Virus record (IMG/VR): IMGVR_UViG_3300009103_000001
Location: 1 to 64,000 of that record
Reading direction: 5' to 3' (one strand)
DNA: 64,000 bases
The notes under the pieces are model-generated. The model saw only the letters and a program-made list of their open reading frames with translations. It did not search any database and was not told the origin of the DNA. The position numbers and the translations under genes are program-made. Positions 38,925 to 61,791 of the stretch are shown here, in pieces. Numbering within the stretch: position 1 is the first letter of the stretch; every line of letters starts with the position of its first letter.

Positions 38925-41177
38925 ATGAATATTAAAAGACATATAAAAGAAGAAATTAATAAATCTGAAAGTGACTTTGATTGGGTATCTGACCAGGACC
39001 CAAACAATATTCATATAAGAAATTTAGAAAAAGGGATGGAAGTAATGGTTAGTTGTCGTTCTTCTAATGGTCGTGAGAAATTCCCTTCAGTATTGAATAG
39101 AAAACTTACAGTAGATTATATATATGATGATTATAGAGAAGGGTCAATCTGTGTTCACTTTAATGATATGGGTGGTATAAAATATCCTTTTGGTTATAAC
39201 CGTGAACCATTAATACCTGGGTTAAGTATATGTGAAAGTTTGGGGTGTAATTTTAAACTTATTAAATATATCGATGAATCTGATACTAGTAATAAATCAA
39301 AAGACATGCAGTGGGTTAAAGATGTTAAACCAATTAAAATAGGTGATTGTTTAAGAGGACGTTTTTATCGGGAGATTCTCCCATATCAAAACACATATAT
39401 TGTAACAGACATTCTGTTTTCAGTAATACAGTTAAAGATTATACCAAATGCATATCATAATGCTACAATTACAAAACCAATAACTGAAGTTATAAACGCA
39501 ATAGAAAAGGGTTATATGGTGGTATGTGATTGTCTTGAAGATTGTCATGAAAATATAAATGAATCAGAATCTAATATGGATTGGATTAAAGATGTTCCAG
39601 ATAAATTACCTTTAATTCATGATAGGACTAAAATTGGTTTAAAAGATTTTTTAATGGATTTTATGGAGGATAAATCATCTGGAGTATTGGAGGGATTATA
39701 TGATTCAGAACAATATAAACCAACAGATGAATATTTTGATAATATAGAAGCTGAATATGGTCCAGCTCATTGGGAAAATGAAGGGTTAGGTGATTGGGTA
39801 GATTATGATTGGAAAGAACATGGTTATTGGACAAATCATGATGGTACTCCATGGGTTGGTAATTTCGATTTGTTAGAAGAATTAGAAATGGGTTGTGATT
39901 CATGGGAATTTATTGAACGCAAAACAGATGATTATGATTTAGAGTACGGTGGTTGGAATGATTCATTTATATTTAAAAGAAAACGAGACGGTAGATATTT
40001 TTCTTTAATGGTGGGAGGTAGTTATCAAGATGGGATAGAAGACCATTGGGATTTTTTATATGAAGTTTTTCCCCAAATGAAATTAGTTTATGAATCTGAT
40101 AATATAAAAAAAGTAATAAGGAAAGAAATAAATGAATCTGATTTTGAATGGATAGACCATGATAGTCCTTTGGATGATATTAGTTTTAAAACACAATGGA
40201 AAGGAATACACACTCCAGTTTTTACTATTAAAGATAATGGAGACCCTAATTGGGTGTCAATTACTTGGATTAATTCTAGTGGGGTAAAACAAGAGTCAAC
40301 TTATGTACGAAATACTGTTAATAAATTTTTTAGAGAAGGTACATGGATACCTATAAATAACACCCGTTATAATTCTATCACAATAAAAGAATCTAAGGGT
40401 TTAGATTGGATGAATAATTTCCAATGGACTGCTGACATGTTATTATCTATGTTAGAAAATTGTAATGAGATTAAAGTTAGTAATTATAATTTAAAAAATG
40501 ATAAACCTTATACGATAAGAGGTAAAAATTTTCCTATTTATACATTAACTAGATGTGAAGAATGGTGGGATAAGTTTTCCCAAATACCATTAGATAAGAA
40601 TAATCGTGGTCCAGCTGAGTGGTATGATGATTATGATGAGGGTAGGATAGGTTTAATATCTACTTATGGACCTAAATATAAAAATATTAGGGATATTAAT
40701 TTGGAAGACATTGACCAGCGTTGGGGTTGGACTATTTCCCAAACACCACAACAAATAGTTAATTCCTTAAATGGTAAAGGTGGTGAACTTTATATTTTAT
40801 TAGATGAAAATCATAGACCTATTTATGACTTAATCCCTAAAGAATATAGAGAAAAAATTAAATCAAAATGGGAAGATTATTTTTATGATGAAAATTTAAA
40901 AAATACTATAAAAGAAGAAATTAAAAGACCATCAGAAAAAGAATTCAAACAGGCGTTAAAAGACATTCTTACCTTAATCCCTTCTTTATCTCACCAAAGA
41001 ATACATGATGAAGGTTTGGAACATGATAGTGAAACAATGATAAGATTAAATAAAGAAATCTTAGAAAAGGTGAAAGAAGGTGATGATGAGGTTTTGGACG
41101 AATTATGGGAAATATCGGGCACTTTGATAATGAAAAACGCAATTAATATAATTACTTTTTATACAAAATGGATTTAA
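38925..41177 (+). CDS. Leader-family modular protein, about 6 modules
   Basis: MNIKRHIKEE...DFDW; linkers IDES..MQWVKD, INES..MDWIKD, INESDFEW, IKESKGLDW. Confidence 0.8.
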   Translation: MNIKRHIKEEINKSESDFDWVSDQDPNNIHIRNLEKGMEVMVSCRSSNGREKFPSVLNRKLTVDYIYDDYREGSICVHFNDMGGIKYPFGYNREPLIPGLSICESLGCNFKLIKYIDESDTSNKSKDMQWVKDVKPIKIGDCLRGRFYREILPYQNTYIVTDILFSVIQLKIIPNAYHNATITKPITEVINAIEKGYMVVCDCLEDCHENINESESNMDWIKDVPDKLPLIHDRTKIGLKDFLMDFMEDKSSGVLEGLYDSEQYKPTDEYFDNIEAEYGPAHWENEGLGDWVDYDWKEHGYWTNHDGTPWVGNFDLLEELEMGCDSWEFIERKTDDYDLEYGGWNDSFIFKRKRDGRYFSLMVGGSYQDGIEDHWDFLYEVFPQMKLVYESDNIKKVIRKEINESDFEWIDHDSPLDDISFKTQWKGIHTPVFTIKDNGDPNWVSITWINSSGVKQESTYVRNTVNKFFREGTWIPINNTRYNSITIKESKGLDWMNNFQWTADMLLSMLENCNEIKVSNYNLKNDKPYTIRGKNFPIYTLTRCEEWWDKFSQIPLDKNNRGPAEWYDDYDEGRIGLISTYGPKYKNIRDINLEDIDQRWGWTISQTPQQIVNSLNGKGGELYILLDENHRPIYDLIPKEYREKIKSKWEDYFYDENLKNTIKEEIKRPSEKEFKQALKDILTLIPSLSHQRIHDEGLEHDSETMIRLNKEILEKVKEGDDEVLDELWEISGTLIMKNAINIITFYTKWI

Positions 41178-41485
41178 GAAAAATTATAAGAGAAGAAGTG
41201 GATAAATTGGGTTGGATTAAAGACCAAGACCCATTATTTGTGGGTTCTTGTATAACAAAACATTTGCATAAATTACATCCAGAAACACATGGCCCAAATA
41301 GTGAAATATATAAAGAATTTGGACCAACAGATTTAGATTATATAATTGTTGGTGAGAGGGATAATGAAATAATTATTAGACCCAAACCTTTTGACCCAAA
41401 CGATGAAAGACTTTATCTTAGTATCAATAAAAAAGAATTAAGCAATAACATCATTAATAAAAAAATAAGTTTTTGTGAATATTAG
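41168..41485 (+). CDS. Leader-family protein
   Basis: MDLRKIIREEVDKLGWIKD. Confidence 0.78.
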   Translation: MDLRKIIREEVDKLGWIKDQDPLFVGSCITKHLHKLHPETHGPNSEIYKEFGPTDLDYIIVGERDNEIIIRPKPFDPNDERLYLSINKKELSNNIINKKISFCEY

Positions 41486-42167
41486 AAAAATCATACGAGA
41501 AGAACTAGATAATATTAAATGGGTTCAAGACCATGGAGATTATTCAGATGCTTTTATTATAAAACCATACCAGCAATCTGCTTTTGGTGGGGATTTATAT
41601 GTAGTATTAGGTTACAATGATAAAGGAATTAGACTTATGAAAGCTGGTGGAATAAGGAGAAATATATATAACCAACCATATGCTCATTTTATTTTTAATA
41701 CCAAAAATGAAGGTGTTGTAATTATAAGAGATTTTCAATGGGAACAATATAGAAAACTTAATGAAGAAGAAAAGGAATTGGTAAATGATGCCATAAAAAG
41801 TAACAAACATCAAGATTATCTTAATATATTAACAAGTGACACAAATTTATATGAGTCAGAAGACCCATTAAAATGGATAAAAGATGTTAAAACAAATGAT
41901 GATATTGCACAAGAGATTTATGATGAGTTGGAATGGGATGCTCTTCACAAGAGACCTCATATCGTTAGAAATCAATGGAATGACATACCTTTCTCAGTTA
42001 GACCATCTCAAAAAAAAGAATCAGCAATTATAATTCCTAGTGTTTTTTATAAAGGGTATAGAGATTATATGAGGAAAAAATGGGGAATTTATGACCCAGA
42101 TATTCAAAAAGAAATTTATTTTAAAATAAGATATTTAATGTATCAAAAAGTAAAAACATATAATTAG
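41475..42167 (+). CDS. Leader-family protein, 2 modules
   Basis: MNIRKIIREELDNIKW; LYESEDPLKWIKD. Confidence 0.78.
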   Translation: MNIRKIIREELDNIKWVQDHGDYSDAFIIKPYQQSAFGGDLYVVLGYNDKGIRLMKAGGIRRNIYNQPYAHFIFNTKNEGVVIIRDFQWEQYRKLNEEEKELVNDAIKSNKHQDYLNILTSDTNLYESEDPLKWIKDVKTNDDIAQEIYDELEWDALHKRPHIVRNQWNDIPFSVRPSQKKESAIIIPSVFYKGYRDYMRKKWGIYDPDIQKEIYFKIRYLMYQKVKTYN

Positions 42168-42172
42168 ATATT

Positions 42173-42988
42173 ATGGATATAAAAAGAATCATAAAAGAAG
42201 AAATTGATGACTTTAATTGGATTAAAGAATCTGACCCCATAGAACAATTAGATAATCATTATGGTAATATATTTAATCATCTCCCAAGACAAGAAAATAT
42301 TCCTGAAACAGATTATTATAAAGATGCTATTACACTACATGAACTTTTAAATCAATTAGAAGGGGATTATGATGATTTGTTTAGTTCAACTCTAGCAGAT
42401 ATATGTACATGGGGATTACCAATTCCAAGTCATGAAAAATATAGTTCAGTACCAATAATAAAAAAAATACTTTGTCATGATGATTTTAAGAAACCTGAAA
42501 TTAAAAAGTTATTAAAGGGATATTATAAAAAAAGAATAAAACAACTTAAAAAGTTGTTAGGACAACCATCAAGTACATGGGAAACTATTAAAAGATATAA
42601 TCCTTTTTATTCAAGGATATCTGACGCAATTAGAACCACCAATCAAAATGTAAATGAATCCGATGATTTTGGTTGGGTTGATAACTCTATTGAGGTAGGT
42701 AAATGTTTCATGGTAAACTATCCCATTCCATCGTACTATACTATGGAGGATATTAATCTATTGTTTCAGATGATTAAAATAATTGACATAAAACAAGGTA
42801 AAGAACTTAAGGGTGTTGGTGGAAGAAAATTAATGGATATTCCAAAAGATTCATTTAATGAAAGAGCAGTTAAAATAAAATTCGCTAAAATGAATTATGG
42901 TTCTTGGAGAGATGACTTTGAAATATATTACCCTGAAGTTCAAGACTGGATTGATTGGGGATGGTTAACACCTGTAGAATGTGAATAA
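42173..42988 (+). CDS. Leader-family protein, 2 modules
   Basis: MDIKRIIKEEIDDFNWIKE; VNESDDFGW. Confidence 0.78.
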   Translation: MDIKRIIKEEIDDFNWIKESDPIEQLDNHYGNIFNHLPRQENIPETDYYKDAITLHELLNQLEGDYDDLFSSTLADICTWGLPIPSHEKYSSVPIIKKILCHDDFKKPEIKKLLKGYYKKRIKQLKKLLGQPSSTWETIKRYNPFYSRISDAIRTTNQNVNESDDFGWVDNSIEVGKCFMVNYPIPSYYTMEDINLLFQMIKIIDIKQGKELKGVGGRKLMDIPKDSFNERAVKIKFAKMNYGSWRDDFEIYYPEVQDWIDWGWLTPVECE

Positions 42989-44039
42989 AAACAAGATGTC
43001 AAAGAACTTAAGAAATATAATAAGGGAAGAAATCAAGGATATACAATGGATTAAAGATACTAATCCACTTAAAGAGGGATATTACTATATTGATGCTGAT
43101 GGTTTATCTCGTGAAGAAAGATTAGATTTACAACAAAAAATATTAGACTTAGGTTTTCGTTGGGATGAACGTTACAATATTCCCCATTATACAAGTGATA
43201 ACCTCAACCATATAGCTTTAAATACATTACGAGGTTATGTTTTAAATGGTGTAGACAATAGAATAACCTATACTGTATTGGCTTATCCTCAGTACGCTAA
43301 AAATTGGTTAACGTATTTATCATATAATAATTTTATTAAATTATATAACCAAAATATTAATGAGAATGATGGTAAGGAATGGATAAAAGATGATTTCGAT
43401 TGGGCTGAAAATCCCATAGAAGTGGGCAATTGTTTTACCCTTAAATTCATAACTCACGGTAACCCTATTTTTGTTATAGATAGAATAGAAGAAGATGGTA
43501 GTGATTTAGATTTGTTTGAGGAACGTGTTGTTGTATATTTTAAAATGATAAATTCTTTCACATCCCTAGGTGGGACACAACAGGTCAACAACTATATGGA
43601 TTACACAGGTCCTGCAAGGATTGAACCATTTGAAGCCTCATTTAAACGAGTTGGTGAATTGATTGATAGGGGTATTTTAATACCTGTAGATTGTGGGAAT
43701 AATCTTAATGAATCAAGTGAGTTGGAATGGATTAAAGATGTTAAAATAAGATTGGGAGATGCATGGAAGGCTGGTTTAATTAATGATGGAGATATTTTAA
43801 CTTTATCTGGAGAACTTGCGGATAGTGACGATTTAAGAAGGATAATGGTAACCGATTTTAGAATAAAAATAATTGAAGTTAAAAACAAATTTACTGACTC
43901 TTACTTCGTACCATTAGATGAAAAATACTATGAATATATTGGATACGATAATGAAGAAGTGAGGTTTTATATAACTGATAAAAAATTAGAAATTGTTGAC
44001 CATATCAAAGTACATGATAATTTAAACATTTATGAATAA
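42981..44039 (+). CDS. Leader-family protein, 3 modules
   Basis: MSKNLRNIIREEIKDIQWIKD; INENDGKEWIKD; LNESSELEWIKD. Confidence 0.78.
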   Translation: MNKNKMSKNLRNIIREEIKDIQWIKDTNPLKEGYYYIDADGLSREERLDLQQKILDLGFRWDERYNIPHYTSDNLNHIALNTLRGYVLNGVDNRITYTVLAYPQYAKNWLTYLSYNNFIKLYNQNINENDGKEWIKDDFDWAENPIEVGNCFTLKFITHGNPIFVIDRIEEDGSDLDLFEERVVVYFKMINSFTSLGGTQQVNNYMDYTGPARIEPFEASFKRVGELIDRGILIPVDCGNNLNESSELEWIKDVKIRLGDAWKAGLINDGDILTLSGELADSDDLRRIMVTDFRIKIIEVKNKFTDSYFVPLDEKYYEYIGYDNEEVRFYITDKKLEIVDHIKVHDNLNIYE

Positions 44040-44057
44040 TATTTATAGATAATTAAC

Positions 44058-45806
44058 ATGGATATTAAAAGAATCATAAAGGAAGAAATTAATGACTTCG
44101 ATTGGGCTGAAAACTTAATTAAGGTGGGTAATTGTTTTGCTATAAGGGACCGAAGGGGTGGTGAAATGTCTCTTAAAATAACTAAAATAATGATACATCC
44201 GGCTAAATCCTACCGTAATGAAGACCCCAATATAAAAGATAACTTCAAACATGATGATGTTATTGTAGTATTCAGTGGAAGCAAATCATCATTAGATTGG
44301 TTATCCTATACAGAAGTTGAAAGTTGGCTTAATAGAGGTGTTTTAATCCCTATTGATTGCGAACAACCAAATGATAAAGAATTTTCAATTATTGATGAAA
44401 ATGATGAGATGGAATGGATTAAAGAAAATCCAATAGAGGTGGGAAAATGTTTCTTAGTAAAAAGCTCAATAATTTTTGGTTGGAATGAGCGTAATGACTT
44501 TACAGTTAAAATAATTGATATAGAACAAGATGAAGGTAAATGGGTAGATATTCCAAAAGGTTCCTTTAATGAAGACACCATTAAAATAAAGTTCAATAAT
44601 TACCTTGAGTTATATTATTCTGATTTTCAAGAATGGCTTAATAATGGATGGTTGATACCCACTGATTGTGGAAATAGTATTAATGAATCTGATGACCTAC
44701 AATGGATTAAAGATATAAAACCATCCTTTTATACACTTGTAATAGATTTAGGGGAGAAGATATCTAGAGCTAAATATAGAAAAGTAATGTTGAAATTAGA
44801 TTCAATGGGTTATAAATGGTATCAATTAGCTATGAATGTGAGAGATAAATTATTAGTTAATAGATTTGGTCCAAAACCAATTATACATTTTTACCCTGGA
44901 TTTAGATATCTAATATTAGGCCCAACAGGAGAAATCCCAGAAAAAGAGATAAGTCATACCAACCTTATAAGAAAATATCCATCATTAGATGTAATCCCCG
45001 TTAATGATTTTCTTAGTCAACCCATAAATGAATCCAATGACCTACAATGGATAAAGGATGTAGAAACATCAAAGTTTAGACCAGAGGTGGGTGATTACAT
45101 AGAAGTAAGGAATAAAGGTAGTGAAGAAGCTTATCGTAATTGGTTGGGTTCAGATTTAAGTGAAGCTTATGATGATGGTATCTATGGTTATAACATACAA
45201 GGTGAAGTTATACCCGAAATTCAAAAAGCGATGAGAGGTAAAGGGTTTAATATAATAGAACATAATACGGATGATGTTATTTTTTTTCCTTATCATGAAT
45301 ATATGTTAGAATATGCTGATATCCATGTTGAATTTAAAGATTTAGATTTAGAATATTACCCCATTTCTTACTCTTCTAAGGATATTAATGAATCAGAAGA
45401 AATGGATGACTTTGGTTGGATTAAAGATTCTCAACCAATATCATACGATTTTCTTTTGGGTAAATCTTTATATTTTAACCCATCCATTAGTGACGCTGAA
45501 ACCAATGAATCAATAATGAAATTATTGGAAAGTATAGGTTTTAAACGCTGGGACAGGAACCCAAATACTAACGAAATAGATGATTGGGGTGGTCTATTTA
45601 AGGAAGAAGAAATTATTGGCTTATATTTTAGACCAAGTGATGGACAGGTAATGTTTACAACAGACGATGACTTAGACCCCCACCATGGTAGTGACTTTGA
45701 TGAATATGATTATGAAGAACATCTTCATGGCGCAGTGGAGGACATCAGTTGGATTGAGATTCTTGATGGTTGGCAAGTATTGGGACATTATTTAGGTACT
45801 GTATAA
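44058..45806 (+). CDS. Leader-family protein, 5 modules
   Basis: MDIKRIIKEEINDFDW; IDENDEMEW; INESDDLQW; INESNDLQW; INESEEMDDFGW. Confidence 0.8.
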   Translation: MDIKRIIKEEINDFDWAENLIKVGNCFAIRDRRGGEMSLKITKIMIHPAKSYRNEDPNIKDNFKHDDVIVVFSGSKSSLDWLSYTEVESWLNRGVLIPIDCEQPNDKEFSIIDENDEMEWIKENPIEVGKCFLVKSSIIFGWNERNDFTVKIIDIEQDEGKWVDIPKGSFNEDTIKIKFNNYLELYYSDFQEWLNNGWLIPTDCGNSINESDDLQWIKDIKPSFYTLVIDLGEKISRAKYRKVMLKLDSMGYKWYQLAMNVRDKLLVNRFGPKPIIHFYPGFRYLILGPTGEIPEKEISHTNLIRKYPSLDVIPVNDFLSQPINESNDLQWIKDVETSKFRPEVGDYIEVRNKGSEEAYRNWLGSDLSEAYDDGIYGYNIQGEVIPEIQKAMRGKGFNIIEHNTDDVIFFPYHEYMLEYADIHVEFKDLDLEYYPISYSSKDINESEEMDDFGWIKDSQPISYDFLLGKSLYFNPSISDAETNESIMKLLESIGFKRWDRNPNTNEIDDWGGLFKEEEIIGLYFRPSDGQVMFTTDDDLDPHHGSDFDEYDYEEHLHGAVEDISWIEILDGWQVLGHYLGTV

Positions 45807-46167: not shown

Positions 46168-46180
46168 CTTTGTTTTGGTT

Positions 46181-46951: not shown

Positions 46952-47038
46952 AATTTTTTTACTAATCCACATATAAATTTAACCCTATTATGAATACTCA
47001 TAACAGGGGCTTTTCTTACAAGAACGATATTTATGATT

Positions 47039-47359
47039 ATGAAACTAAAAAGAATAATAAAAGAATCCATATTAGATAACTGGTTTAGAAAGAATACACT
47101 TAAAACCCTTATAAACAGAAGTGCTTATTCTTATAATATGCATGATGTTATAATTAAAAAAGGTGATGATATAATTATATGGTTAAAACCATTTCCCAAA
47201 AGCAGTTATAGTGAAGAAGACCAACAATATGTATTAAACACAGAAAATGAAACTTTATCAGTATATGGAAGAGGATTAAATAATGAACCTGATTCAATAT
47301 ATAATTTATCAGAAAAAGAATACCATGATATATTCAATAAAATATATCATTTAATATGA
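47039..47359 (+). CDS. Leader-family protein
   Basis: MKLKRIIKES after GATATTTATG. Confidence 0.75.
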   Translation: MKLKRIIKESILDNWFRKNTLKTLINRSAYSYNMHDVIIKKGDDIIIWLKPFPKSSYSEEDQQYVLNTENETLSVYGRGLNNEPDSIYNLSEKEYHDIFNKIYHLI

Positions 47360-47805
47360 ATATAAGAAGAATCATAAGGGAAGAAATGGATAACCATATA
47401 ACCAAAGTTATATTAGATACCATTAATGAATATGATATGGACCCTTATGATATTAATAATGATTTATGTGAAGATTTCACAATGGATGTAATTAATAAAA
47501 TGGGAGGATATAACGATAATTTATATGAATTATCTGATGATATGATTTCTAATTTTAGAGACCCAAAATATGCGTTAGATTACTGGGATGGAGAATTAAT
47601 AGAAACACCTTATGGCGTATGGAGCAAAAATGGGTTAGATAGATATGGATACCCTCCCATTCCTTTAAAAGATATTAAAGAAGAATTTAATCATGTATGG
47701 ATATATTACAATGGAAAACATTATGATGCAGAAGAACCTTATGGAGTTAATAACTGGACCGAATTGCCAATGATTAAAAGACAATTAAACTTATATAATA
47801 TATGA
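47356..47805 (+). CDS. Leader-family protein with papain/transglutaminase-like Cys-His-Asp motif
   Basis: INNDLCEDF...HVWIYYNGKHYDAE; paralog of 56979. Confidence 0.7.
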   Translation: MNIRRIIREEMDNHITKVILDTINEYDMDPYDINNDLCEDFTMDVINKMGGYNDNLYELSDDMISNFRDPKYALDYWDGELIETPYGVWSKNGLDRYGYPPIPLKDIKEEFNHVWIYYNGKHYDAEEPYGVNNWTELPMIKRQLNLYNI

Positions 47806-48806
47806 AATCAACAATAAGAAGAATCATAAGGGAAGAAATGGATGGTCTGGAATGGATTAAAAATGTTCAATCCAATCAGGACATTGCACAAGAGATTGCT
47901 GATGAAACAGAGGTAGATGATAATAAAAGAAAAATATATTTTCCCTTTTCCACCCCTTTCCCTCACTCTCTTTCTTTTTCTCTTCCTTTCTTTTCTTCAC
48001 ATTGTAAAAAAGTATATGGATTAAATGATGATGATATAAAAGATATATGGAAAAGATATAAGAAGATGGTTATGGATAAAATAAATGACCATAATAATCT
48101 TAATGAGAATGATGAATTAAAATGGATAAAAGATGTTCAATCCAATCAGGACATTGCACAGAAAATTGCTGATGAAACAATTATTGACTATGACTATAAA
48201 ATATATGCACCCTCCTTACCCAAATACCCTTTTCCACCTTTCCCACCAAATAAACCAATACGTTCCTTTCATGCTTATTGTGAAGAACAATATGGATTAA
48301 ATGATGATGATATAAAAGATGTATGGAATAGATATAAGAAACTTATTACAGATAAAATTAATGACTATAGGGAAAATTTATTCTCCACTAATGCTTTTAA
48401 TGAATCACCCAATATTAATGAATCCAATGACCTACAATGGATTAAGGATATTAGGTCAATTAAAATAGATGATTGTTTAAAGGTTAGTGGAAACTACACC
48501 TTTTCAAAGGATGATGAAGGAGAAATAACACATTGGCTACATCGTCCATGGACATATATTGTAAAAGATATTAAAAATAACAATTTAGGGGATTATTTAC
48601 TTTTAGAAATTATTTATACTGATTTACCAACTAACCGGAGAAGTACATATTTAATTACAAAATCATTAAAAGAAGTTATAGATGCTATAGAAAGAGGTTA
48701 TTTAAAATTTTGTGATAACCCTAAAAAACGAGATGAGTTTCAAGATGAAATAAATAGTGATTTATATCCTGGTAATATGGGAGATGAAATGTCTGCACCT
48801 AGATAA
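47802..48806 (+). CDS. Leader-family protein, 3 modules (first two duplicated)
   Basis: VQSNQDIAQ.IADET...YGLNDDDIKD.W.RYKK twice. Confidence 0.8.
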   Translation: MKSTIRRIIREEMDGLEWIKNVQSNQDIAQEIADETEVDDNKRKIYFPFSTPFPHSLSFSLPFFSSHCKKVYGLNDDDIKDIWKRYKKMVMDKINDHNNLNENDELKWIKDVQSNQDIAQKIADETIIDYDYKIYAPSLPKYPFPPFPPNKPIRSFHAYCEEQYGLNDDDIKDVWNRYKKLITDKINDYRENLFSTNAFNESPNINESNDLQWIKDIRSIKIDDCLKVSGNYTFSKDDEGEITHWLHRPWTYIVKDIKNNNLGDYLLLEIIYTDLPTNRRSTYLITKSLKEVIDAIERGYLKFCDNPKKRDEFQDEINSDLYPGNMGDEMSAPR

Positions 48807-48815
48807 TATAAAAAA

Positions 48816-49190
48816 ATGAATATAAGAAGAATCATAAGGGAAGAAATAAATGACTTTGATTGGGCTGAAAATCATATAGAGGTTGGGAAATGTTTCAAAA
48901 AACTTTCCAGCAACTACAGAAAAGAAGGGGGTTGGTTAATCGATGAACCTAATGAAAACTATACAGTTAAAATAATTGATATAAAACAAGGTAAAGAACT
49001 TCACAATAAAGGCAAATGGATAGATATCCCTAAAGGTTCATTTGATGAAAGAGCAGTTATAATAAAGTTCGCCAGACCTGAGATGAAGAGAACTGGATAT
49101 ACAAATTGGACAGGTGATATTGAGTTATATTACTCTAATGTTCAAGAATGGCTTAATGATGGGTGGTTAGTGCCTACAGAATGTGAATAA
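48816..49190 (+). CDS. Leader-family protein
   Basis: MNIRRIIREEINDFDWAEN; IEVGKCF module. Confidence 0.78.
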   Translation: MNIRRIIREEINDFDWAENHIEVGKCFKKLSSNYRKEGGWLIDEPNENYTVKIIDIKQGKELHNKGKWIDIPKGSFDERAVIIKFARPEMKRTGYTNWTGDIELYYSNVQEWLNDGWLVPTECE

Positions 49191-49770
49191 AAACAAGATG
49201 TCAAAGAACTTAAGAAATATAGTTAAAAGAATACTGAAAGAATCAGAATTAGATTGGTTCTCAGATATGAATATCGATAAGATAAAAGTGGGTGCTAAAT
49301 TTAACGTCAATGGCTCCTTTACAGGAACTTTTATAATTAATGAGATACTTTGGAATGAGAAGTTTCCTATGCATACTGAGGTTAACTATGAAGGTATTGA
49401 TTATAGTGGTTCCAAATTTAAGAATAGTGTTAGAATTAAAGATTTTTTAAGATGGTTAGACAATGGAATAATAGTACCCATAGAAAGAACACTAAAAGAA
49501 GCAGAATTCGATTGGTTCTCAGATATGAATATAGATAAGATAAAAGTTGGTGCTAAATTTAAATCTGTTAAACATTTGGATTTCCAAACAGGGGATGCAG
49601 GAACTTTTATAATTGATGAGATACTTTGGAATGAGAGGTCTCTTATGCATAGTGCAGTTAAGTATAGTGGTGTTGATTATAGAGGTTTCAAGTTTTTAGA
49701 TTGGGTCATAGTTAAAGATTTTTTAAGATGGTTGGATGATGGAACAATAGTACCTATAGAAGATAAATAG
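49183..49770 (+). CDS. Leader-family protein, 2 duplicated modules
   Basis: LKE(S/A)E.DWFSDMNIDKIKVGAKF twice. Confidence 0.78.
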   Translation: MNKNKMSKNLRNIVKRILKESELDWFSDMNIDKIKVGAKFNVNGSFTGTFIINEILWNEKFPMHTEVNYEGIDYSGSKFKNSVRIKDFLRWLDNGIIVPIERTLKEAEFDWFSDMNIDKIKVGAKFKSVKHLDFQTGDAGTFIIDEILWNERSLMHSAVKYSGVDYRGFKFLDWVIVKDFLRWLDDGTIVPIEDK

Positions 49771-52036: not shown

Positions 52037-52702
52037 ATGCGTAAATCAATCAAAAAAATATTAAGTGAAAACGAATGGGAATGGGTTAATAAGATAGAAC
52101 CTAAACTAACTAAAGACCTAATCTTATGCTCTAACCATGAAAGGTTTAATCCAGGTTGTATGGAAATACTAAATGTATCGAATAGAATAGTATACACGAA
52201 ATCCTTAGAGACTGGTAACCGTTACGCAGACCCTATAGCAGATGTTATGAGGTGGTTAACTGATGGTGATTATCTACTAATGGATGGAACAGGAGAACTG
52301 GTAATACCATTAAAAGAATCAGATGATATGGACTGGATAAGAGATGTGGACCCAATGGTATCATTCGAAGACATTCATAAGGATAACTACCCACTTAGAA
52401 GAGATAGAACTTTTGACGGCTATGATTTAAAATTTGGTGTGAAGATTAAAAACTTGGATGCTATTATAGAAATGACAATGGATTGTAATGGTGATGAAGG
52501 AGAATGGATTGAGGATATTGCATGGTGTATAGTTGTGAATAGTAGCTACTTAAACCATCAAGATGTATACTGTGTTACCTCTCCAAAATATACATGGGAA
52601 GGACAAAGGGCTTGTTTGGATGTATACTTCTACGATAAAAATAATGTTAACATAGCCGACTACTGGGTATCAGATGATATGATTGAGTTATATTATCTGT
52701 GA
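52037..52702 (+). CDS. Leader-family protein, 2 modules
   Basis: MRKSIKKILSENEWEW; LKESDDMDWIRD. Confidence 0.75.
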   Translation: MRKSIKKILSENEWEWVNKIEPKLTKDLILCSNHERFNPGCMEILNVSNRIVYTKSLETGNRYADPIADVMRWLTDGDYLLMDGTGELVIPLKESDDMDWIRDVDPMVSFEDIHKDNYPLRRDRTFDGYDLKFGVKIKNLDAIIEMTMDCNGDEGEWIEDIAWCIVVNSSYLNHQDVYCVTSPKYTWEGQRACLDVYFYDKNNVNIADYWVSDDMIELYYL

Positions 52703-53670: not shown

Positions 53671-53682
53671 CTTCTTTTTGGT

Positions 53683-54248: not shown

Positions 54249-54260
54249 CTTTGTTTTGGT

Positions 54261-54631: not shown

Positions 54632-54636
54632 CTTTG

Positions 54637-54783: not shown

Positions 54784-54798
54784 CTTCTTTGTTTTGTT

Positions 54799-55062: not shown

Positions 55063-55246
55063 CTTTGTTTTGGTTTAATATACCTCTGCCTACACCTTCC
55101 TCTATCATAAACAATTGTTGCCAAAGTGCTATAGCAGTTTCTGTATCTCCGGATTCTTTTATCTTCATTATTTCATTGTCCATTTCAACAAAATCTTCTT
55201 TAGTCTTGCATTGAAATAGTCTTTCTAATATTTCTTCTTTACTCAT
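55052..55246 (-). CDS. Cassette: small protein ending LNQNKDDD
   Basis: First gene below promoter 55262-55290. Confidence 0.65.
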   Translation of the reverse strand: MSKEEILERLFQCKTKEDFVEMDNEIMKIKESGDTETAIALWQQLFMIEEGVGRGILNQNKDDD

Positions 55247-55261
55247 CTTTGTTTTGGTTTA

Positions 55262-55290
55262 AATATAAGTAATACATTTTAGATTATCAA
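55262..55290 (-). promoter_or_regulatory. Sigma70-like promoter abutting a junction repeat
   Basis: TTGATA-17 nt-TATATT. Confidence 0.6.
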
Positions 55291-55301
55291 TAAAAAAAAT
55301 G

Positions 55302-55341
55302 GCGGCTTAAGAAAAATCCCCCCTACCCCCCTTTTTTATTT
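55302..55341 (+). repeat. About 40 bp G/C-run element, copy 2
   Basis: GCGGCTTAAGAAAAATCCCCCCTACCCCCCTTTTTTATTT. Confidence 0.75.
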
Positions 55342-55360
55342 CTATTTTTATCTAATTCTT

Positions 55361-55513
55361 TTAACTATGATTGTCAAAAATTATTGGTTCAGTACCATCA
55401 TGAATATTGCCAAGTTTTATGTAAAATGTGGCTTTTGAAAGAGTAAACATAAAATAGCCTTCCATCACATCTTTTTTAAAGTTATGTTTCTTATTTTTCT
55501 TTATTATTTTCAT
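55361..55513 (-). CDS. Cassette: 50 aa protein (not in track)
   Basis: Shares 63 bp (2 mismatches) with 50463-50525. Confidence 0.6.
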   Translation of the reverse strand: MKIIKKNKKHNFKKDVMEGYFMFTLSKATFYIKLGNIHDGTEPIIFDNHS

Positions 55514-55656
55514 CTTTGTTTTGGTTGTTCTCTATACAATTCTTCTAACCGTTTCTTATGTGATTTAACATACTTTCTATTTAAGTCTAATAATGTCATC
55601 TTATATCTATAGTCTTTATCCGTTAGATATCTCCATATATGTTTAATAAATCTCAT
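55510..55656 (-). CDS. Cassette: 48 aa protein (not in track)
   Basis: MRFIKHIWRY...QPKQR. Confidence 0.55.
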   Translation of the reverse strand: MRFIKHIWRYLTDKDYRYKMTLLDLNRKYVKSHKKRLEELYREQPKQR

Positions 55657-55849
55657 CTTTGTTTTGGTTTTTAATATCCAACACCCATTCCATTAAATCA
55701 ATCATACTACATTGTGTTCTGAATTGTTCTCTTTTTTCAGATATACCCCACAAACCTCCATTTGGTGGATTATTTAAGAAATGAGTTAATTCATCTTTAT
55801 GTTCATTCATTTCTATTAACTTGTTATATATTTCTTCTCTGCTTTTCAT
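55643..55849 (-). CDS. Cassette: small protein ending NQNKDEIY
   Basis: Junction-bounded. Confidence 0.65.
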   Translation of the reverse strand: MKSREEIYNKLIEMNEHKDELTHFLNNPPNGGLWGISEKREQFRTQCSMIDLMEWVLDIKNQNKDEIY

Positions 55850-55965
55850 CTTCTTTTTGGTTTTTCATATTATAATTAATGTATATATTATTACAGAACA
55901 AGCAATTAATATTCCTATAATATGTAACCCCTTCTGTAACTTATTTAATTTATTCCAATCCTCTC

Positions 55966-56151
55966 TCATCTTTGTTTTAATTTAATTAATTTATCACACA
56001 ACCTATATTGTTCTTCCTGTATATAATGTTTGATTAATTCATCTATATCATTATTTGTATATTCTATTTTACCCAATCTAATATCTAGAAATTTAAAATT
56101 CATTTCTATATTTCTCTTAACAGTTTTAAATCTATTACTAAGTTCACTCAT
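55966..56151 (-). CDS. Cassette: small protein ending KLKQR
   Basis: Junction-bounded. Confidence 0.6.
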   Translation of the reverse strand: MSELSNRFKTVKRNIEMNFKFLDIRLGKIEYTNNDIDELIKHYIQEEQYRLCDKLIKLKQR

Positions 56152-56307
56152 CTGTATGTGCTTTGTCTATTCCTGTGTCAATCATCTTTGTAGAGTTTTA
56201 TTAAATCTTTAATAATGTAATACCCTGCCATTAAAAAAGAGAATATTGCTATCCCATAAAATATTAATCCTATTATACCTATTATTTTAATCATGTTCAT
56301 CTTTGTT

Positions 56308-56811
56308 TTAATTTTTTTTCCATCCACAATCACAATGATTGGCAATACCTAACATATCGTCTTTTTCCCAACCAAGTTCCTTTAATACTTTCATTTGGGT
56401 TTCTTCATCTCTATCCATACCAAATAGGTCTTTACATCCATTGTATTTCCTACTCCAACAGTTTGGTTTGTGTGATGCTTTAATATCTCCCCATTTTTTT
56501 AATTTGGTTTCATACATAATAAAACCTGGAAGATGGCCTATTACCCACCACTCTTTACAACCATTGTATTCATCGTTCCAATCATACATTGCCATTAAAT
56601 CCATCTTATAATAATTCTCATCATCTCTAGATAAGTTTTCATTAATATCGACAGAGACTGCATAAGAATGAAATTTTGGGTTTTCTGAAAACCTTTTAAC
56701 AAAGGGTATCTCTAAAACTTGGTCGAAGGTGTCTACTTCATACTCACTATCTTCAAAACCTGAAAAATAATTTGGTCTTCTTTCTATAAATTTCTTTTTA
56801 CTCATCTTCAT
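56308..56811 (-). CDS. Cassette: hypothetical protein with Cys/His motifs
   Basis: Junction-bounded; HKPNC...C...HCDC. Confidence 0.65.
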   Translation of the reverse strand: MKMSKKKFIERRPNYFSGFEDSEYEVDTFDQVLEIPFVKRFSENPKFHSYAVSVDINENLSRDDENYYKMDLMAMYDWNDEYNGCKEWWVIGHLPGFIMYETKLKKWGDIKASHKPNCWSRKYNGCKDLFGMDRDEETQMKVLKELGWEKDDMLGIANHCDCGWKKN

Positions 56812-56978
56812 TTTAATTTATATACAATGGTCCACAATGGGTGAATCATTTGTATTAGTTAAATTTCTTATTAGTTTAACATCATCTTTAATAATGTGTG
56901 TAGTACCATCGGTATATAAGATTTCTACAATACCATCTTCAATTGTAACTTCTTTAATGTTATCTAAATTAAACTCTC

Positions 56979-57272
56979 TCATCTTCGTTTTGATTTTAAA
57001 TTTCTTTTAGCTAAAGGTAATTCCGTCCAGTTATCAACTCCATTAGGTACTTCAGAATCATAATGTTTCCCATTATAATAAACCCAACAATGAGTTATTT
57101 CATCATCAACAGATACTAATGGAATACACTTTTCATCACTTATACCTTTCATCTTATTAATAACAGTCGTAGCAAACTCACCACATAAACCATTGTTAAT
57201 ATCATAAGGACTATAGTTTATTTTTTTATATTTGTTAATAGTATCTAATATAACCTCTGTTATGTTACTCAT
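56979..57272 (-). CDS. Cassette: papain/transglutaminase-like Cys-His-Asp protein
   Basis: INNGLCGEFA...HCWVYYNGKHYDSE; paralog of 47356 without the leader. Confidence 0.7.
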   Translation of the reverse strand: MSNITEVILDTINKYKKINYSPYDINNGLCGEFATTVINKMKGISDEKCIPLVSVDDEITHCWVYYNGKHYDSEVPNGVDNWTELPLAKRNLKSKRR

Positions 57273-57304
57273 CTTCTTTTGGTTTATTTATATGTTACAA
57301 ACAA

Positions 57305-57538
57305 TTAAAATAAGATTAATGGGTATTCATTCAGATATAGCCCATATATAAACAACCCTATTGATGTAAAAAGCAGTAGCCAAAACCTTCTTTTAGGGGC
57401 TGTTCCCTGTTCAATTTCTATAAACCCCCATAACATTTTTTTTCTACTAGACCATTTCTCTTCATACGTGGCTATGTTTAACACAATGCTAAATATTAGG
57501 AGTATTACCACTACTGCTTTTAATTCAAATCCTACCAT
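57305..57538 (-). CDS. Cassette: two-TM membrane protein
   Basis: Hydrophobic segments. Confidence 0.6.
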   Translation of the reverse strand: MVGFELKAVVVILLIFSIVLNIATYEEKWSSRKKMLWGFIEIEQGTAPKRRFWLLLFTSIGLFIYGLYLNEYPLILF

Positions 57539-57773
57539 CTTCTTTTATTTTTTTTAATTCAATACATTTTTCGAAATCGTTCTTTTCTGCGAAGTAATCT
57601 AATATTAAATCAAAGTCAATATCATTTAAATCTTTGCGTATATCATGAGCTACCCATATTTCTTCTTCATTGGTATCAATTAATTCGTCAAATGTATTCT
57701 TACCTGTTAGTATTTTATAAGAATTAATCATAGATAATTCAATAAATTTATCATTAGATACTATTTTACTCAT
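57525..57773 (-). CDS. Cassette: first gene of the array
   Basis: MSK start in junction; YF.EK..FEKC.EL motif. Confidence 0.65.
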   Translation of the reverse strand: MSKIVSNDKFIELSMINSYKILTGKNTFDELIDTNEEEIWVAHDIRKDLNDIDFDLILDYFAEKNDFEKCIELKKIKEDGRI

Positions 57774-57788
57774 CTTTGTTTTGATTTA

Positions 57789-57817
57789 AAAATAAGTAAT
57801 ATATTGGATATTATCAA
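57789..57817 (-). promoter_or_regulatory. Sigma70-like promoter heading the cassette array
   Basis: TTGATA-17 nt-TATTTT; near copy of 55262-55290. Confidence 0.55.
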
Positions 57818-57853: not shown

Positions 57854-58144
57854 ATGAATATCAAGAAAATTATAAGGGAAGAAATCGATTTAAATTGGGT
57901 TAAAGATATCAGTCCTGATAATGCCACCATAAAGGATTTGGAAGTGGGAATGAATGTTATACCAAGCTGTAATAGTTTGGGTTTATTTGATATATCATAT
58001 GCTGTAGCTGAAATACATGAACATACTGAGGGAAACTATGATGAGGGTTCTTGTGTGTTATTATATCCCAACACTGAAAACACAGAGTATAATGTATTAT
58101 ATTTATGTGAACACTTAAACTGTAGTTTTAAAATATTAACCTAA
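57854..58144 (+). CDS. Leader-family protein
   Basis: MNIKKIIREEIDLNWVKD; module resembles the first module of 38925. Confidence 0.75.
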   Translation: MNIKKIIREEIDLNWVKDISPDNATIKDLEVGMNVIPSCNSLGLFDISYAVAEIHEHTEGNYDEGSCVLLYPNTENTEYNVLYLCEHLNCSFKILT

Positions 58145-60674: not shown

Positions 60675-60863
60675 ATGAATAAAACTAAATTTAAAATTGG
60701 TGATAAAGCAATAAAACCAAAAGGGTATAATTTCCCATGTACCATTGTTGGTGTTTTTGAGACCTTAAAGGGTGAGATTAGAATAGTTGGTGAAATGGAC
60801 GATTATGGTCTATTACATATTTTTAATGAAAACCAATTAGAACATTATGGAGAAAATAAATAA
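60675..60863 (+). CDS. Small SH3/KOW-like hypothetical protein
   Basis: KFKIGDKA.KPKGY.FP..IV.VF. Confidence 0.6.
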   Translation: MNKTKFKIGDKAIKPKGYNFPCTIVGVFETLKGEIRIVGEMDDYGLLHIFNENQLEHYGENK

Positions 60864-61383
60864 AATAAAAGAATTAGCCACAACATTACATGGTGACCAA
60901 AAAAGAAAATATTCTGGTGACCCATATATTACACATACCTTCAGAGTTGCTGATACAGTAAAAGAAAATGGTGGTGATGAGGCTATGATATATGCGGCAG
61001 TTCTCCATGATGTTTTAGAGGATACACCAACAACTGAAACAGAACTTTTTGAAAAATTAATGACAATTATTGAACCTAATATTGTTATAGATGTCATTAA
61101 ACTGGTTAAAGAATTAACAGATGTCTTTACTACAGAAAAATACCCAAATATGAATAGAAAAGGTAGGAAGGAAATGGAGGCTATCAGAATGGGTAAAATT
61201 TCACCTAGAGCTCAAACAATTAAATACGCCGACCTTTTGGATAATATTGAGGATATCATGAAAAACGACCCAAATTTTGGTAAATTATATATTAAAGAAA
61301 AATATATTATTTTAAAACACATGAATAAAGGGAATAGAAATCTTTATGAAAAATGTTTAGAAATAATTAATAAACATATATAA
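60847..61383 (+). CDS. Small HD-domain (p)ppGpp hydrolase-like protein (Mesh1/SAH)
   Basis: H..Q.RK..G.PYITH, AAVLHDVLEDT, IKYAD.LDN. Confidence 0.88.
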   Translation: MEKINKIKELATTLHGDQKRKYSGDPYITHTFRVADTVKENGGDEAMIYAAVLHDVLEDTPTTETELFEKLMTIIEPNIVIDVIKLVKELTDVFTTEKYPNMNRKGRKEMEAIRMGKISPRAQTIKYADLLDNIEDIMKNDPNFGKLYIKEKYIILKHMNKGNRNLYEKCLEIINKHI

Positions 61384-61410
61384 ACAACCATCATTAAGAT
61401 ATTTATTGAT

Positions 61411-61791
61411 ATGAACATAAAAAAGATAATAAAAGAAGAATTAGAATGGATTAAAAAAATCGAACCAAAATATATGCCAAAAAAAGATGAGTTGATTGAG
61501 GTTAGGTACGAAAATAAAGATTCTTTTTTACAATGGATTGGTTCATTTAAAACACCTTATTTAAGTGGTAAGTTTGGTAAATACATTAAAGGGCGTGTTG
61601 TAGACATATCTGATAATTTCTTCTTATTAGTGGTAAAAGATACAACTGGAAATCATGGAATATATTTCCCAACAATAACCGATAACATTGAATGGACAAA
61701 ACCATATTGGCCAACTAGTGGGGTAGGTGGACCACCTAAAGGTATATATGTTGAAGATATTGGTCTTAGATATGTACCACTATCGTCTTAG
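61411..61791 (+). CDS. Leader-family protein
   Basis: MNIKKIIKEELEWIKK; module resembles the fourth module of 44058. Confidence 0.75.
   Translation: MNIKKIIKEELEWIKKIEPKYMPKKDELIEVRYENKDSFLQWIGSFKTPYLSGKFGKYIKGRVVDISDNFFLLVVKDTTGNHGIYFPTITDNIEWTKPYWPTSGVGGPPKGIYVEDIGLRYVPLSS

Follow-up and report, generated by a model that had tools for sequence, protein, structure and literature searches.

What does it mean when small, unrelated protein modules recur in different genes of one phage and the DNA at their joints is so alike? The locus considered here lies in the window, by which we mean the whole stretch of DNA analysed, comprising the first 64 kb of a 210-kb contig from an uncultured marine T4-like jumbo phage that encodes gp20, gp21 protease and gp23 homologues. 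The original prediction was that four module families recur in different gene contexts and that the linkers between them look like recombination handles for combinatorial shuffling. As described below, all six of the underlying observations hold and the interpretation is supported, although with qualifications. About twenty genes are built from such modules, and relatives show the modules re-assorted at a shared peptide header, which may in addition be a capsid-targeting and protease-cutting signal.

Module families, linkers and the shared header

The four module families are real paralogues, as shown by comparing the proteins of the window with one another by BLASTP (E 1e-8 to 1e-32; genes are named here by their listed start positions). 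Module A (IEVGKCF...C) matches between g42173 (residues 162-271) and g48816 with 49% identity (E 6e-32) and between g44058 (residues 111-204) and g48816 with 47% identity (E 4e-26), with divergent copies in g44058 (1-102) and g42981 (137-238). The DIAQ module of g41475 (127-230) matches g47802 (11-98; E 1e-8) and occurs twice in g47802. The IK(I)(G/D)DCL...AIE(K/R)GY module is shared by g38925 (117-202) and g47802 (200-305; 38%, E 5e-13), and the LE.GM.V..SC module by g38925 (1-113) and g57854 (36%, E 4e-12). The three copies of the linker DNA, which form one family in a search for repeats, are 81-83% identical over 47 nt and contain an invariant 16-mer, ATGACCTACAATGGAT. The 44-bp junction is exact at both of its positions, and none of 100 shuffles gave any match, while its flanks are about 70-80% identical. 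It was not found in other IMG/VR contigs.

What the original prediction did not recognize is that the linkers are copies of one conserved peptide header of roughly 16 residues, (I/L)NESDD(F/L/M)xW(I/V)(K/R)D, with about 35 copies across the contig. At the N-terminus of a protein the same header is extended to M-x-I-(K/R)(K/R)-I-I-(K/R)-E-E-...-W-x-x-D, and in this form it opens about 20 genes. In addition, the gene listed from a GTG at 42981 more likely starts at the ATG at 42996, and the gene at 49183 likewise more likely starts at 49198. The features are collected in Table 1.

Table 1. Header genes, linkers and junctions in the 64-kb window.
Position	Strand	Feature	Remarks
37886..38818	-	Three-module header gene; probably starts at the GTG at 38818 (VNIKRIIRES...); internal headers VNESNDMKWIED and INESDLDWVKDV	GATATTTAT upstream at 38845 on the minus strand; BLASTP matches to g44058 and g47802
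38925..41177	+	750-aa header protein: LE.GM.V..SC module, IKIGDCL module, large acidic part	Internal N-terminal-like headers at 40081-40132 and 40873-40924 look like fossils of gene fusion; repeat family D17; GATATTTAT at 38910
41168..41485	+	Single-module header gene, 105 aa	Cys near the start and the end
41475..42167	+	Two-module header gene: unknown module, then DIAQ module	
42173..42988	+	Two-module header gene: unknown 152-aa module, then module A	
42996..44039	+	Three-module header gene (x, divergent A, x)	Starts MSKNLRNIIREE at the ATG at 42996
44058..45806	+	Five-module header gene: A', A, x, F, x	
44709..45053	+	One module (115 codons) between two NDLQW linkers	Absent from relatives in sequencing runs X9, X4, X5 and X6; depth 0 over 44754-45005 in all four runs
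44679..44725	+	Linker INESDDLQWIKDIKP; with the two linkers below, the rare-codon subtype AAT GAC CTA CAA TGG	92% identical to positions 1390-1455 of L023; matches an X4 contig with 1 mismatch in 67 nt
45024..45070	+	Linker INESNDLQWIKDVET	
48414..48460	+	Linker INESNDLQWIKDIRS	Between a DIAQ module and the IKIDDCL module
42976..43019	+	Exact 44-bp junction	End of module A (ECE, stop), spacer AAAACAAG, start MSKNLRNI of the next gene
49178..49221	+	Second copy of the exact 44-bp junction	
47033..49770	+	Second operon of header genes: 47033-47359, 47356-47805, 47802-48806 (DIAQ-DIAQ-IKIDDCL), 48816-49190 (module A alone), 49198-49770 (G-G tandem duplicate)	GATATTTAT at 47026
52037..52702	+	Header gene with N-terminal ...KKILSENEWEWVNK and internal LKESDDMDWIRDV	
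57854..58144	+	Single-module header gene (LE.GM.V..SC module)	Preceded by GATATTTAT
61411..61791	+	Single-module header gene	Homologous to the fourth module of g44058 (family F)
62313..62861	+	Gene with the N-terminal tag MDIRKIIKEE but no W-KD part	Preceded by GATATTTAT
8187..11862	+	Five further header genes: 8187-8960, 9391-9735, 9736-10071, 10880-11218, 11218-11862	Outside the region of the original prediction

Exchange of modules at the header

These genes represent a lineage-specific multigene family in uncultured marine T4-like jumbo phages. Each unit is a 90-130-aa module of varied fold, including SH3/Tudor-like beta-barrels with a Cys at each end, the helical DIAQ domain and many orphans, and each is preceded by the header, which is of low confidence (disordered) in AlphaFold2 models of two unrelated folds. 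No module has a known function. Genes hold one to five modules here, and eight or more in a relative, and the same modules occur alone, first, in the middle or last. N-terminal and internal headers fall in the same alignment columns and align as homologous, so genes and modules interconvert by fusion and fission.

Module order is not fixed in relatives, which differ by whole-module insertions, deletions and swaps whose breakpoints mostly lie in the header-coding DNA. The architectures among 33 family members and related contigs include A; x-A; A-A-x-F-x; B-B-A; B-B-C; B-C-H-A; A-L; E-D and others, and a complete 380-kb relative (G002) holds homologous modules in quite different proteins. Run X9, from a different study than the probable source sample, has one 471-nt contig that joins 44708 to 45054 and skips 345 nt (115 codons), in frame, with 295 and 176 nt of 96-99% identical flank, thereby removing exactly the module between two linkers. 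This was the only clean linker-to-linker joint seen, and it is in a short assembled contig rather than in raw reads. Two other sequences, L023 and L009, are 88% identical through module A and their homology ends at the module's last codons, while P0018 and P0031 are 94% identical over 273 aa, starting at the W of the header. Moreover, a 66-67-nt linker island is 92-98% identical between otherwise diverged contexts.

The joints are not, however, special at the DNA level as a class. Over 35 headers, synonymous-codon identity equals the codon-usage expectation (0.645 observed, 0.640 expected), and hence the general DNA likeness of the joints reflects a conserved peptide written in the AT-biased codons of an AT-rich genome rather than a DNA signal. 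Only the NDLQW linker subtype (rare codons TCC, GAC, CTA, which are shared by the three NDLQW linkers and by L023) and the 44-bp junction show excess identity. Some breakpoints also lie inside modules, or about 20 residues away from a header. The term 'handle' therefore describes where exchange happens and not a demonstrated purpose. We infer that, as the recombination machinery of T4-type phages needs only short patches of homology, and as the header is the one patch that every module shares, in-frame crossovers there yield intact new combinations, with conserved stretches inside modules being used as well.

What the header might do

We propose, tentatively and as a reading that is possible but less likely than not, that the header is the functional analogue of the T4 capsid-targeting sequence (CTS) plus a gp21 cleavage site (hydrophobic-x-Glu). 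MNIRRIIRE|E would parallel T4 MKTYQEFIAE|, and the internal INE|S sites would let the prohead protease cut fused polyproteins back into single modules that are packaged and ejected with the DNA, which would explain why the peptide, and not the DNA, is conserved. The phage has a gp21-type protease (Peptidase_S77, 88.8 bits) whose His and Ser align to the T4 gp21 structure 5JBL, as well as gp23, portal and TerL, and the gene order of the head module matches that of Flavobacterium phage immuto. The major capsid protein has L-I-N-E|T just before the segment aligned to residue 12 of mature T4 gp23*, where relatives have LINE|T and LISE|T and immuto has IVSE|A. When internal headers were defined without the (I/L)xE part, 81 of 90 still had [ILVM]xE within 12 residues upstream, against 21% expected, with E at -6 in 49 of them, although the acidic-residue selection used inflates E. 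The motif [KR][KR]II[KR]E[ED] falls in the first 25 residues in 30 of 31 occurrences, and these include small genes between the gp21 and gp23 homologues. The start-proximal motif (G)ATATTTAT precedes TerL, portal, protease and head-core genes as well as the header operons, and 44 of 120 copies lie upstream of an ORF start, against 8 of 120 for the reverse complement. In T4, the CTS is the first 10 residues, processing depends on residues 8 and 10 and the mature internal proteins are diverse (PMC9026906, PMC3012670), and T4 Alt is cut at ITE-6 and LTE-619 (PMC5694885). On the other hand, no proteomic, transcriptomic or biochemical datum shows that the header proteins are in virions or are cut, the header has no sequence similarity to the T4 CTS, the conserved DDxxW(I/V)KD part lies on the P' side of the proposed cut and is unexplained by the protease model, and most modules are acidic, unlike the basic T4 IPII and IPIII. 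A co-fold of the protease with the peptide gave no answer.

Taken as a whole, we consider the above account more likely than not, but alternatives must be weighed. The header might instead be a flexible inter-domain linker carrying a short docking motif (acidic run plus Trp) for some common partner, such as the phage's own Hsp70 or a host or phage complex, with no capsid targeting or proteolysis and with the multi-module proteins acting intact in the infected cell. The disorder of the header, the acidic modules, the presence of a phage-encoded Hsp70 and the failure of a protease site to explain DDxxW(I/V)KD, the most conserved part, all fit this view, but we regard it as rather unlikely given that the hydrophobic-x-Glu part is equally conserved and has the same form as the predicted capsid-protein maturation site, that the N-terminal tag is shared with small genes inside the head-assembly module and that the header operons carry the same start-proximal motif as the portal, terminase and protease genes. 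It is less likely still that the modules are exposed virion parts, such as fibres, whiskers or capsid decoration, in which small binding domains are strung on linkers and shuffling changes adsorption specificity. The late-type promoter motifs, the Cys at each end of the small beta-barrel modules, which would suit a disulfide outside the cell, and the precedent of the gp37/gp38 adhesins (PMC3157838) could be cited for this, yet many members are single 95-125-aa modules with no anchoring domain, there are no collagen-like, coiled-coil or beta-helix fibre features and no fibre Pfam or PHROG hits, the genes are scattered over the genome rather than grouped with tail genes, and helical DIAQ modules are mixed in with the barrels.

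The two remaining alternatives question the shuffling itself. That the pattern is only tandem duplication and divergence of a repeat-domain family, without preferential exchange at linkers, is in keeping with the synonymous identity of the headers, with g49198 being a plain tandem duplicate and with the weak hhalign links between some module families (A with D at 87% probability, A with G at 30%). This is, however, very improbable and already largely refuted by the sharing of the header between unrelated folds (beta-barrel and helical), the different neighbours of the same module in relatives, the exact joint in X9, the linker islands and the shared rare codons. An artefact of metagenome assembly, in which the repeated linkers and the 44-bp repeat caused chimeric joins, appears the least likely of all. 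While the 44-bp exact repeat exceeds common k-mer sizes and Logan unitigs break at the linkers, the other exact repeats in the linkers are only about 16-20 nt, an independent contig from run X3 (42466-43034) crosses the 44-bp junction from unique sequence on the left to 15 nt beyond it, the architecture recurs in many independent assemblies from IMG/VR and ENA, and all the long ORFs stay in frame.

Relation to known phage systems

A close parallel to the proposed function is provided by the T4 internal proteins (IPI, IPII, IPIII, Alt), which carry the N-terminal CTS and are cut by the gp21 prohead protease (PMC9026906, PMC3012670, PMC5694885). In both cases a T4-type phage with gp21 or its homologue has a short conserved N-terminal tag on otherwise unrelated, fast-evolving small proteins, the cargo is diverse and differs among relatives, and the tag ends in hydrophobic-x-Glu at almost the same distance from Met (IRE at residues 7-9 here, IAE at 8-10 in T4). 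The phage described here differs in that its tag has no sequence similarity to MKTYQEFIAE, in that the motif is also repeated inside proteins between modules, which would make polyproteins and is unknown for T4, in the conserved DDxxW(I/V)KD that follows the proposed cut, and in having about 20 genes and 35 modules per genome, most of the modules being acidic. Paralogous head and inner-body protein families of phiKZ-like jumbo phages, for example SPN3US gp53/gp54 with identical 15-residue N-termini containing protease motifs (PMC5694885, PMC9026906), are expanded families of head-internal proteins that share conserved N-terminal propeptides, are cut after Glu by a gp21-related protease, have several cut sites per protein and vary in copy number among relatives. 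Those paralogues are homologous along their whole length, however, with no repeated header joining unrelated modules and no reported domain shuffling.

With respect to the shuffling, the PeSL (promoter-early stem-loop) cassettes of T4-type phages (PMC2839356, PMC4122927) are also short conserved sequences flanking orphan genes in plastic regions of the genome, where homologous recombination between copies inserts, deletes or replaces the unit between them and close relatives differ by exactly such events. PeSLs are non-coding intergenic promoter-terminator elements, whereas here the repeat is an in-frame coding segment that is conserved at the peptide level and involves no stem-loop, so the exchange re-assorts protein domains within ORFs. 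A more PeSL-like array, with the junction TAAACCAAAACAAAGATG, lies next door at 53-58 kb. In the T-even tail-fibre adhesins (gp37 His boxes, gp38 glycine-rich motifs; PMC3157838), conserved in-frame peptide motifs similarly delimit variable segments and serve as crossover points that swap them, but those segments lie within one structural protein with a known receptor-binding role, while here whole autonomous domains of different folds are dispersed over about 20 genes of unknown role.

Genomic setting and features of the header genes

The 210,157-bp IMG/VR record (G000; about 64% complete by CheckV, with a GC content of about 28%) encodes a T4-type head-assembly module, and the gene order TerL, portal, protease, scaffold-like protein, MCP matches that of Flavobacterium phage immuto. 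The His and Ser of the gp21-type protease align with those of the T4 gp21 structure 5JBL, and the nearest relatives of the capsid protein in the phage collection searched are an uncultured huge phage, Microcystis phage Mel-JY01 and the immuto phages, at about 40% identity. Near-identical DNA occurs in marine, cold-seep and brine metagenomes. The window also encodes Hsp70, thymidylate synthase and a MAM-domain protein with a type-IX-secretion sorting tail, the last of which hints that the host is a member of the Bacteroidota. Table 11 reads every gene and no tRNA was found.

Self-BLASTP confirmed all four of the module families that the original prediction had described as recurring in different gene contexts, and the three linkers and the exact 44-bp junction that it had noted are likewise present. 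The locations of these and of the other features considered here are listed in the table below, in which genes of the window are named by their start coordinates (g42173 and so on).

Locations of features in the window, in the full record (G000), in the complete 380-kb relative (G002) and in the related contigs L009 and L023
Location	Feature	Details
g42173 162-271; g48816; g44058 (twice)	Module A	A divergent copy lies in the gene placed at 42981 by the original prediction
g41475 127-230; g47802 (twice)	DIAQ module	
g38925 117-202; g47802 200-305	IKIGDCL...AIEKGY module	
g38925 1-113; g57854	LE.GM.V..SC module	
44703, 45048 and 48438	Linkers with rare codons	81-83% identical over 47 nt, with an invariant 16-mer
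42976-43019 and 49178-49221	44-bp junction	Exact in both copies; contains a shorter relative (TAAAAACAAGATG) of the leader at 53100-57800
40081-40132 and 40873-40924	Two copies of the full N-terminal tag inside the 750-aa g38925	NIKKVIRKEINES..., NLKNTIKEEIK...
38908-38959	Promoter-and-start region	Still resembled by the first internal tag of g38925 (repeat family D17)
49322-49485 and 49598-49761	Internal tandem duplicate of one module in g49198	Copies 82% identical over 164 nt
53100-57800, minus strand (also 46140-46190)	About 17 tiny ORFs (34-97 aa) following one another	Each joined to the previous one by TAA-ACCAAAACAAAG-ATG; the same 25-nt leader is exact in L023 119-143
38910, 47026, 57841, 61398, 62296, 19540, 31589; G000 95574, 97675, 112347, 115333 and others	Oriented motif (G)ATATTTAT	5-35 nt upstream of start codons
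2967-5465	832-aa protein with MAM domains	C-terminal type-IX-secretion sorting domain (Por_Secre_tail)
12055-15009	984-aa protein combining the mycobacteriophage GP88 and L5 gp82 domains	Pfam E 3.5e-33 and 2.2e-27
21510-23366	Full-length Hsp70/DnaK gene	Pfam HSP70, E 6e-253
62313-62861 and 63391-63999; L009 8563-9999	Several proteins carrying the N-terminal tag share an L(I/V)V.PK...C.(F/Y)G..T.WCT stretch	The neighboring ORF at 63391 hits Pfam PcfJ weakly (E 1e-4, below the cut-off)
G000 95595-97385	Large terminase (Terminase_6N)	
G000 97698-99575	T4-type portal (Portal_T4)	
G000 104290-105018	gp21-type prohead protease	Peptidase_S77, 88.8 bits
G000 110065-111888	gp23-type major capsid protein	
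G000 105015-107805 and 115360-116431; L009 18635-19201	Second conserved N-terminal tag, MKK(I/V)IKLNENDIENLVKKIIKE(E/D)	Heads six or seven small genes between the gp21 and gp23 homologues and just after the capsid gene
G002 109811-113575 and 359237-363970	Header proteins of 1,254 and 1,577 aa	At least eight and seven internal headers

The header peptide and the DNA of the joints

Splitting every protein at the recurring Trp shows modules of about 90-130 aa, each of which is preceded by one peptide motif. We collected 90 internal copies from this contig, from G002 and from the family proteins without requiring the first three residues, and their consensus is (I/L)-N-E-S-D-D-(F/M/L)-(D/E)-W-(I/V)-(K/R)-D-(V/I)-x-P. 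Of the 90, 81 have [ILVM]-x-E upstream of the Trp, against 21% expected, although the acidic-residue selection used inflates E, and the E is at -6 or -7 in 67 of them. The same motif, extended on its N-terminal side to M-x-I-(K/R)(K/R)-I-I-(K/R)-E-E, opens about 20 genes scattered over the contig, and the N-terminal and internal versions occupy the same columns when aligned. AlphaFold2 models of module A (mean pLDDT 70, a small beta-barrel plus a C-terminal helix) and of the DIAQ module (mean pLDDT 70, helical) both show the header at low confidence, with the predicted fold beginning a few residues after W-x-K-D, and the header is therefore a tag or linker shared by structurally unrelated domains. 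Module A and several other families carry one Cys just after the header and one at the very end. Profile-profile comparison with hhalign links only some of the families, and weakly (A with D at 87%, A with G at 30%).

Pfam and PHROGs scans of 30 header proteins and head-module small proteins gave nothing above threshold, and megablast and tblastn searches of 50,697 phage records found no match for the region, for module A, for g44058 or for a head-module tag protein. Fold searches with module A against the PDB, AlphaFold DB clusters, BFVD and VIA-wide gave only generic SH3/Tudor/chromo-barrel likeness (best Z 5.5, no E below 1e-3), nothing useful was returned with the DIAQ model or from the ESM Atlas, and a literature search for the motif strings found nothing relevant.

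While the original prediction emphasized DNA-level identity at the joints, the DNA of the joints is in general not specially conserved. Over 35 headers aligned on the Trp, codons encoding the same residue are identical in 64.5% of pairs, whereas genome codon usage predicts 64.0%, and hence the DNA likeness of the joints is what a conserved peptide gives in an AT-rich genome. Because there is no synonymous-site excess, a recombinase or homing site in the linkers is rejected. A signal peptide, an alternative genetic code and a tRNA-linked element are also rejected; all of the ORFs are open in table 11 and no tRNA was found. There are two exceptions to the general absence of special DNA conservation. 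The three linkers listed in the table share the rare codons GAC (21% of Asp codons) and CTA (8% of Leu), and two of them share TCC (3% of Ser). The same DNA occurs in another genome's contig, L023, which is 92% identical over 66 nt, yet the flanking module A copies are only about 35% identical as proteins and the downstream modules are unrelated. The second exception is the 44-bp junction, for which no shuffled sequence gave any match and which is far longer than any run of identity expected at about 70% similarity, the flanks being only about 70-80% identical. This points to recent intragenomic copying or gene conversion, as does the patchwork similarity of g48816 to the two other A copies. 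Scans of IMG/VR for the 44-bp junction and for the DNA of the linker subtype encoding NDLQW gave 0 hits outside this record, and both are therefore young or local rather than widely conserved DNA elements. The array of tiny ORFs on the minus strand looks like a set of cassettes with a conserved translation-coupling or PeSL-like junction.

Shuffling of modules among relatives

A profile of module A finds only 33 proteins among 1.84 billion cluster representatives. In these and in related contigs the modules occur in many orders, with a header at nearly every boundary: A; x-A; A-A-x-F-x; B-B-A; B-B-C; B-C-H-A; A-L; B-L; E-D; F-x-D; x-G-A. The complete relative G002 has a capsid protein 81% identical to this one and contains about 22 header genes and about 50 headers, but its header loci show no synteny with this contig, and homologues of the modules of the window are found there in different proteins and at different loci.

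Comparisons between close relatives show where the breakpoints lie. Contigs L023 and L009 are 88% identical through module A up to its last codons, after which one continues with a linker and a new module while the other has a stop codon and the next gene. The proteins P0018 and P0031 are 94% identical over 273 aa beginning at the Trp of the header, upstream of which one has four more modules and the other an N-terminal header. The most direct evidence is from metagenome run X9, which comes from a different study than the probable source sample, and in which a single 471-nt contig joins 44708 to 45054, skipping 345 nt (115 codons), with flanks of 295 and 176 nt that are 96-99% identical. All four runs compared in this way show zero depth across the skipped module. 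In addition, a 966-nt contig in run X4 matches the window only over 44656-44722, with 1 mismatch, between foreign flanks. Most of the joints seen in the first round of mapping were discarded as cross-mapping of paralogues (for example, 42885 to 44605 and 44653 to 42976 are g48816 and its junction), and joints with short sides of 22-35 nt, such as 43024 to 43376 and 41510 to 41862, are suggestive of header-to-header deletions of 351 nt but are too weak to use. Not every breakpoint is at a header, as P0010 and g42173 switch from low to about 92% identity inside module A, at KIIDIKQG, and the right end of the P0018/P0031 block lies about 20 residues before a header. The two internal tags of g38925 look like fossils, suggesting that this 750-aa protein arose by fusion of neighboring genes, while g49198 is an example of module gain by simple duplication.

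This is, then, a family of header-plus-module units that fuse, split, duplicate, drop out and change neighbors, mostly by events in the header-coding DNA. As for the mechanism, we infer that T4-type recombination needs only short homology (less than 50 bp is cited; PMC2839356), that the header is the only patch common to all units, and that crossovers there keep the reading frame, for which reason the products of such crossovers survive selection. The original prediction that the linkers are places of combinatorial shuffling is in this sense supported, although the general likeness of the joints resides in the peptide and not in a DNA signal.

Possible role of the header and comparison with known systems

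Why the peptide itself is conserved is not shown, and our best guess, which remains tentative in the absence of expression or proteome data, is that the header is an analogue of the T4 capsid-targeting sequence (CTS) together with a gp21 cleavage site. In T4, the first 10 residues of IPIII suffice for loading into the prohead, processing depends on residues 8 and 10 (I-A-E), and the cargo is diverse (PMC9026906, PMC3012670), while T4 Alt is cut at ITE-6 and LTE-619 (PMC5694885). Here the tag reads MNIRRIIRE/E and the linkers read INE/S (the slash marking the proposed cut), and the predicted maturation site of the capsid protein of this phage is L-I-N-E/T, immediately before the segment that aligns with residue 12 of mature T4 gp23*. 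Relatives have LINE/T and LISE/T, and immuto has IVSE/A, although the P2 residue of the capsid-protein site does not covary with the linkers across the genomes G000, G001 and G002. The [KR][KR]II[KR]E[ED] motif falls in the first 25 residues in 30 of 31 occurrences, on cargo modules that are of different predicted folds or are orphans, and it also heads small genes lying between the protease and capsid genes, which carry a longer tag, MKKIIKLNENDIENLVKKIIKEE. The second conserved tag contains LNE and IKE motifs and overlaps the KKIIKEE part of the header. Moreover, the header operons share the oriented start-proximal motif (G)ATATTTAT with terminase, portal, protease and head-core genes. In G000, 44 of 120 copies lie within 35 nt upstream of an ORF start, against 8 of 120 for the reverse complement, and in G002 the figures are 78 of 181 against 14 of 181. 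As it precedes these genes, it is probably the late promoter of this lineage, although this timing is inferred and not measured. On this reading fusion would cost nothing, because the protease would cut the polyprotein back into modules inside the head. On the other hand, the best-conserved part of the header, DDxxWIKD, lies after the proposed cut, the modules are mostly acidic, and by inspection the tag (M-N-I-R-R-I-I-R-E-E) shows no similarity to the T4 CTS (MKTYQEFIAE) beyond the hydrophobic-x-E end, so that this is analogy and not family membership. A predicted complex of the protease with a 37-residue linker peptide gave no answer (score 0.00), and we do not count it either way.

Alternatively, the header could be a docking linker with no role in the capsid, or the modules could be exposed fibre or decoration domains. 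Two further possibilities, that the pattern reflects duplication and divergence only or that it is an assembly artefact, are largely excluded by the independent assemblies, by a contig from run X3 that crosses the 44-bp junction, by the X9 joint, and by the sharing of the header by unrelated folds.

A more far-reaching possibility, which we regard as doubtful though not excluded, is that the header is a dual-purpose cassette signal, which as a peptide sends any downstream domain into the prohead and marks it for release by the gp21-type protease, and which as the only sequence shared by all modules is also where recombination re-assorts them in frame. The phage lineage would then keep an evolvable combinatorial library of ejected proteins, encoded as freely fusing and splitting polyproteins of up to 1,577 aa, as a protein-level counterpart of an integron for virion cargo.

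Phage accessory proteins that travel with the DNA are a front line against host defences, but how phages diversify them is known only for a handful of T-even loci. Here one peptide header unites dozens of orphan domains across a clade of marine, cold-seep and brine jumbo phages, and environmental contigs catch module gain or loss exactly at the header. If the header proves to be a targeting-and-cleavage signal, it would reveal processed polyproteins in a T4-type phage, give a rule for predicting virion cargo in uncultured jumbo phages from sequence alone, and offer a compact tag for loading foreign proteins into such capsids. Even without that, it is a clear natural case of in-frame domain shuffling driven by a shared linker.

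In function, as inferred here, the family most resembles the T4 internal proteins with their targeting sequence, in that it is encoded by a phage with a gp21-type protease and a T4-type head-assembly module and has a short conserved N-terminal tag ending in (L/I)-x-E on otherwise unrelated proteins, but the tag is not homologous to that of T4. As in a viral polyprotein processed at conserved inter-domain sites, a potential protease recognition motif, of the same form as the predicted maturation site of the capsid protein, accompanies the domain boundaries at the frequency noted for the internal headers. In evolution it most resembles PeSL-mediated modular shuffling in T4-type phages (PMC2839356, PMC4122927) and the motif-mediated swaps in T-even adhesins (PMC3157838). 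In the former, close relatives differ by insertion, deletion or replacement of the unit lying between two copies, as in the X9 joint and in the L023/L009 and P0018/P0031 comparisons, but here the repeat is in-frame coding sequence inside ORFs rather than an intergenic promoter-terminator. In scale it resembles the head paralogue families of phiKZ-like phages (PMC5694885). It is not a member of any of these, and its units are whole domains of different predicted folds.
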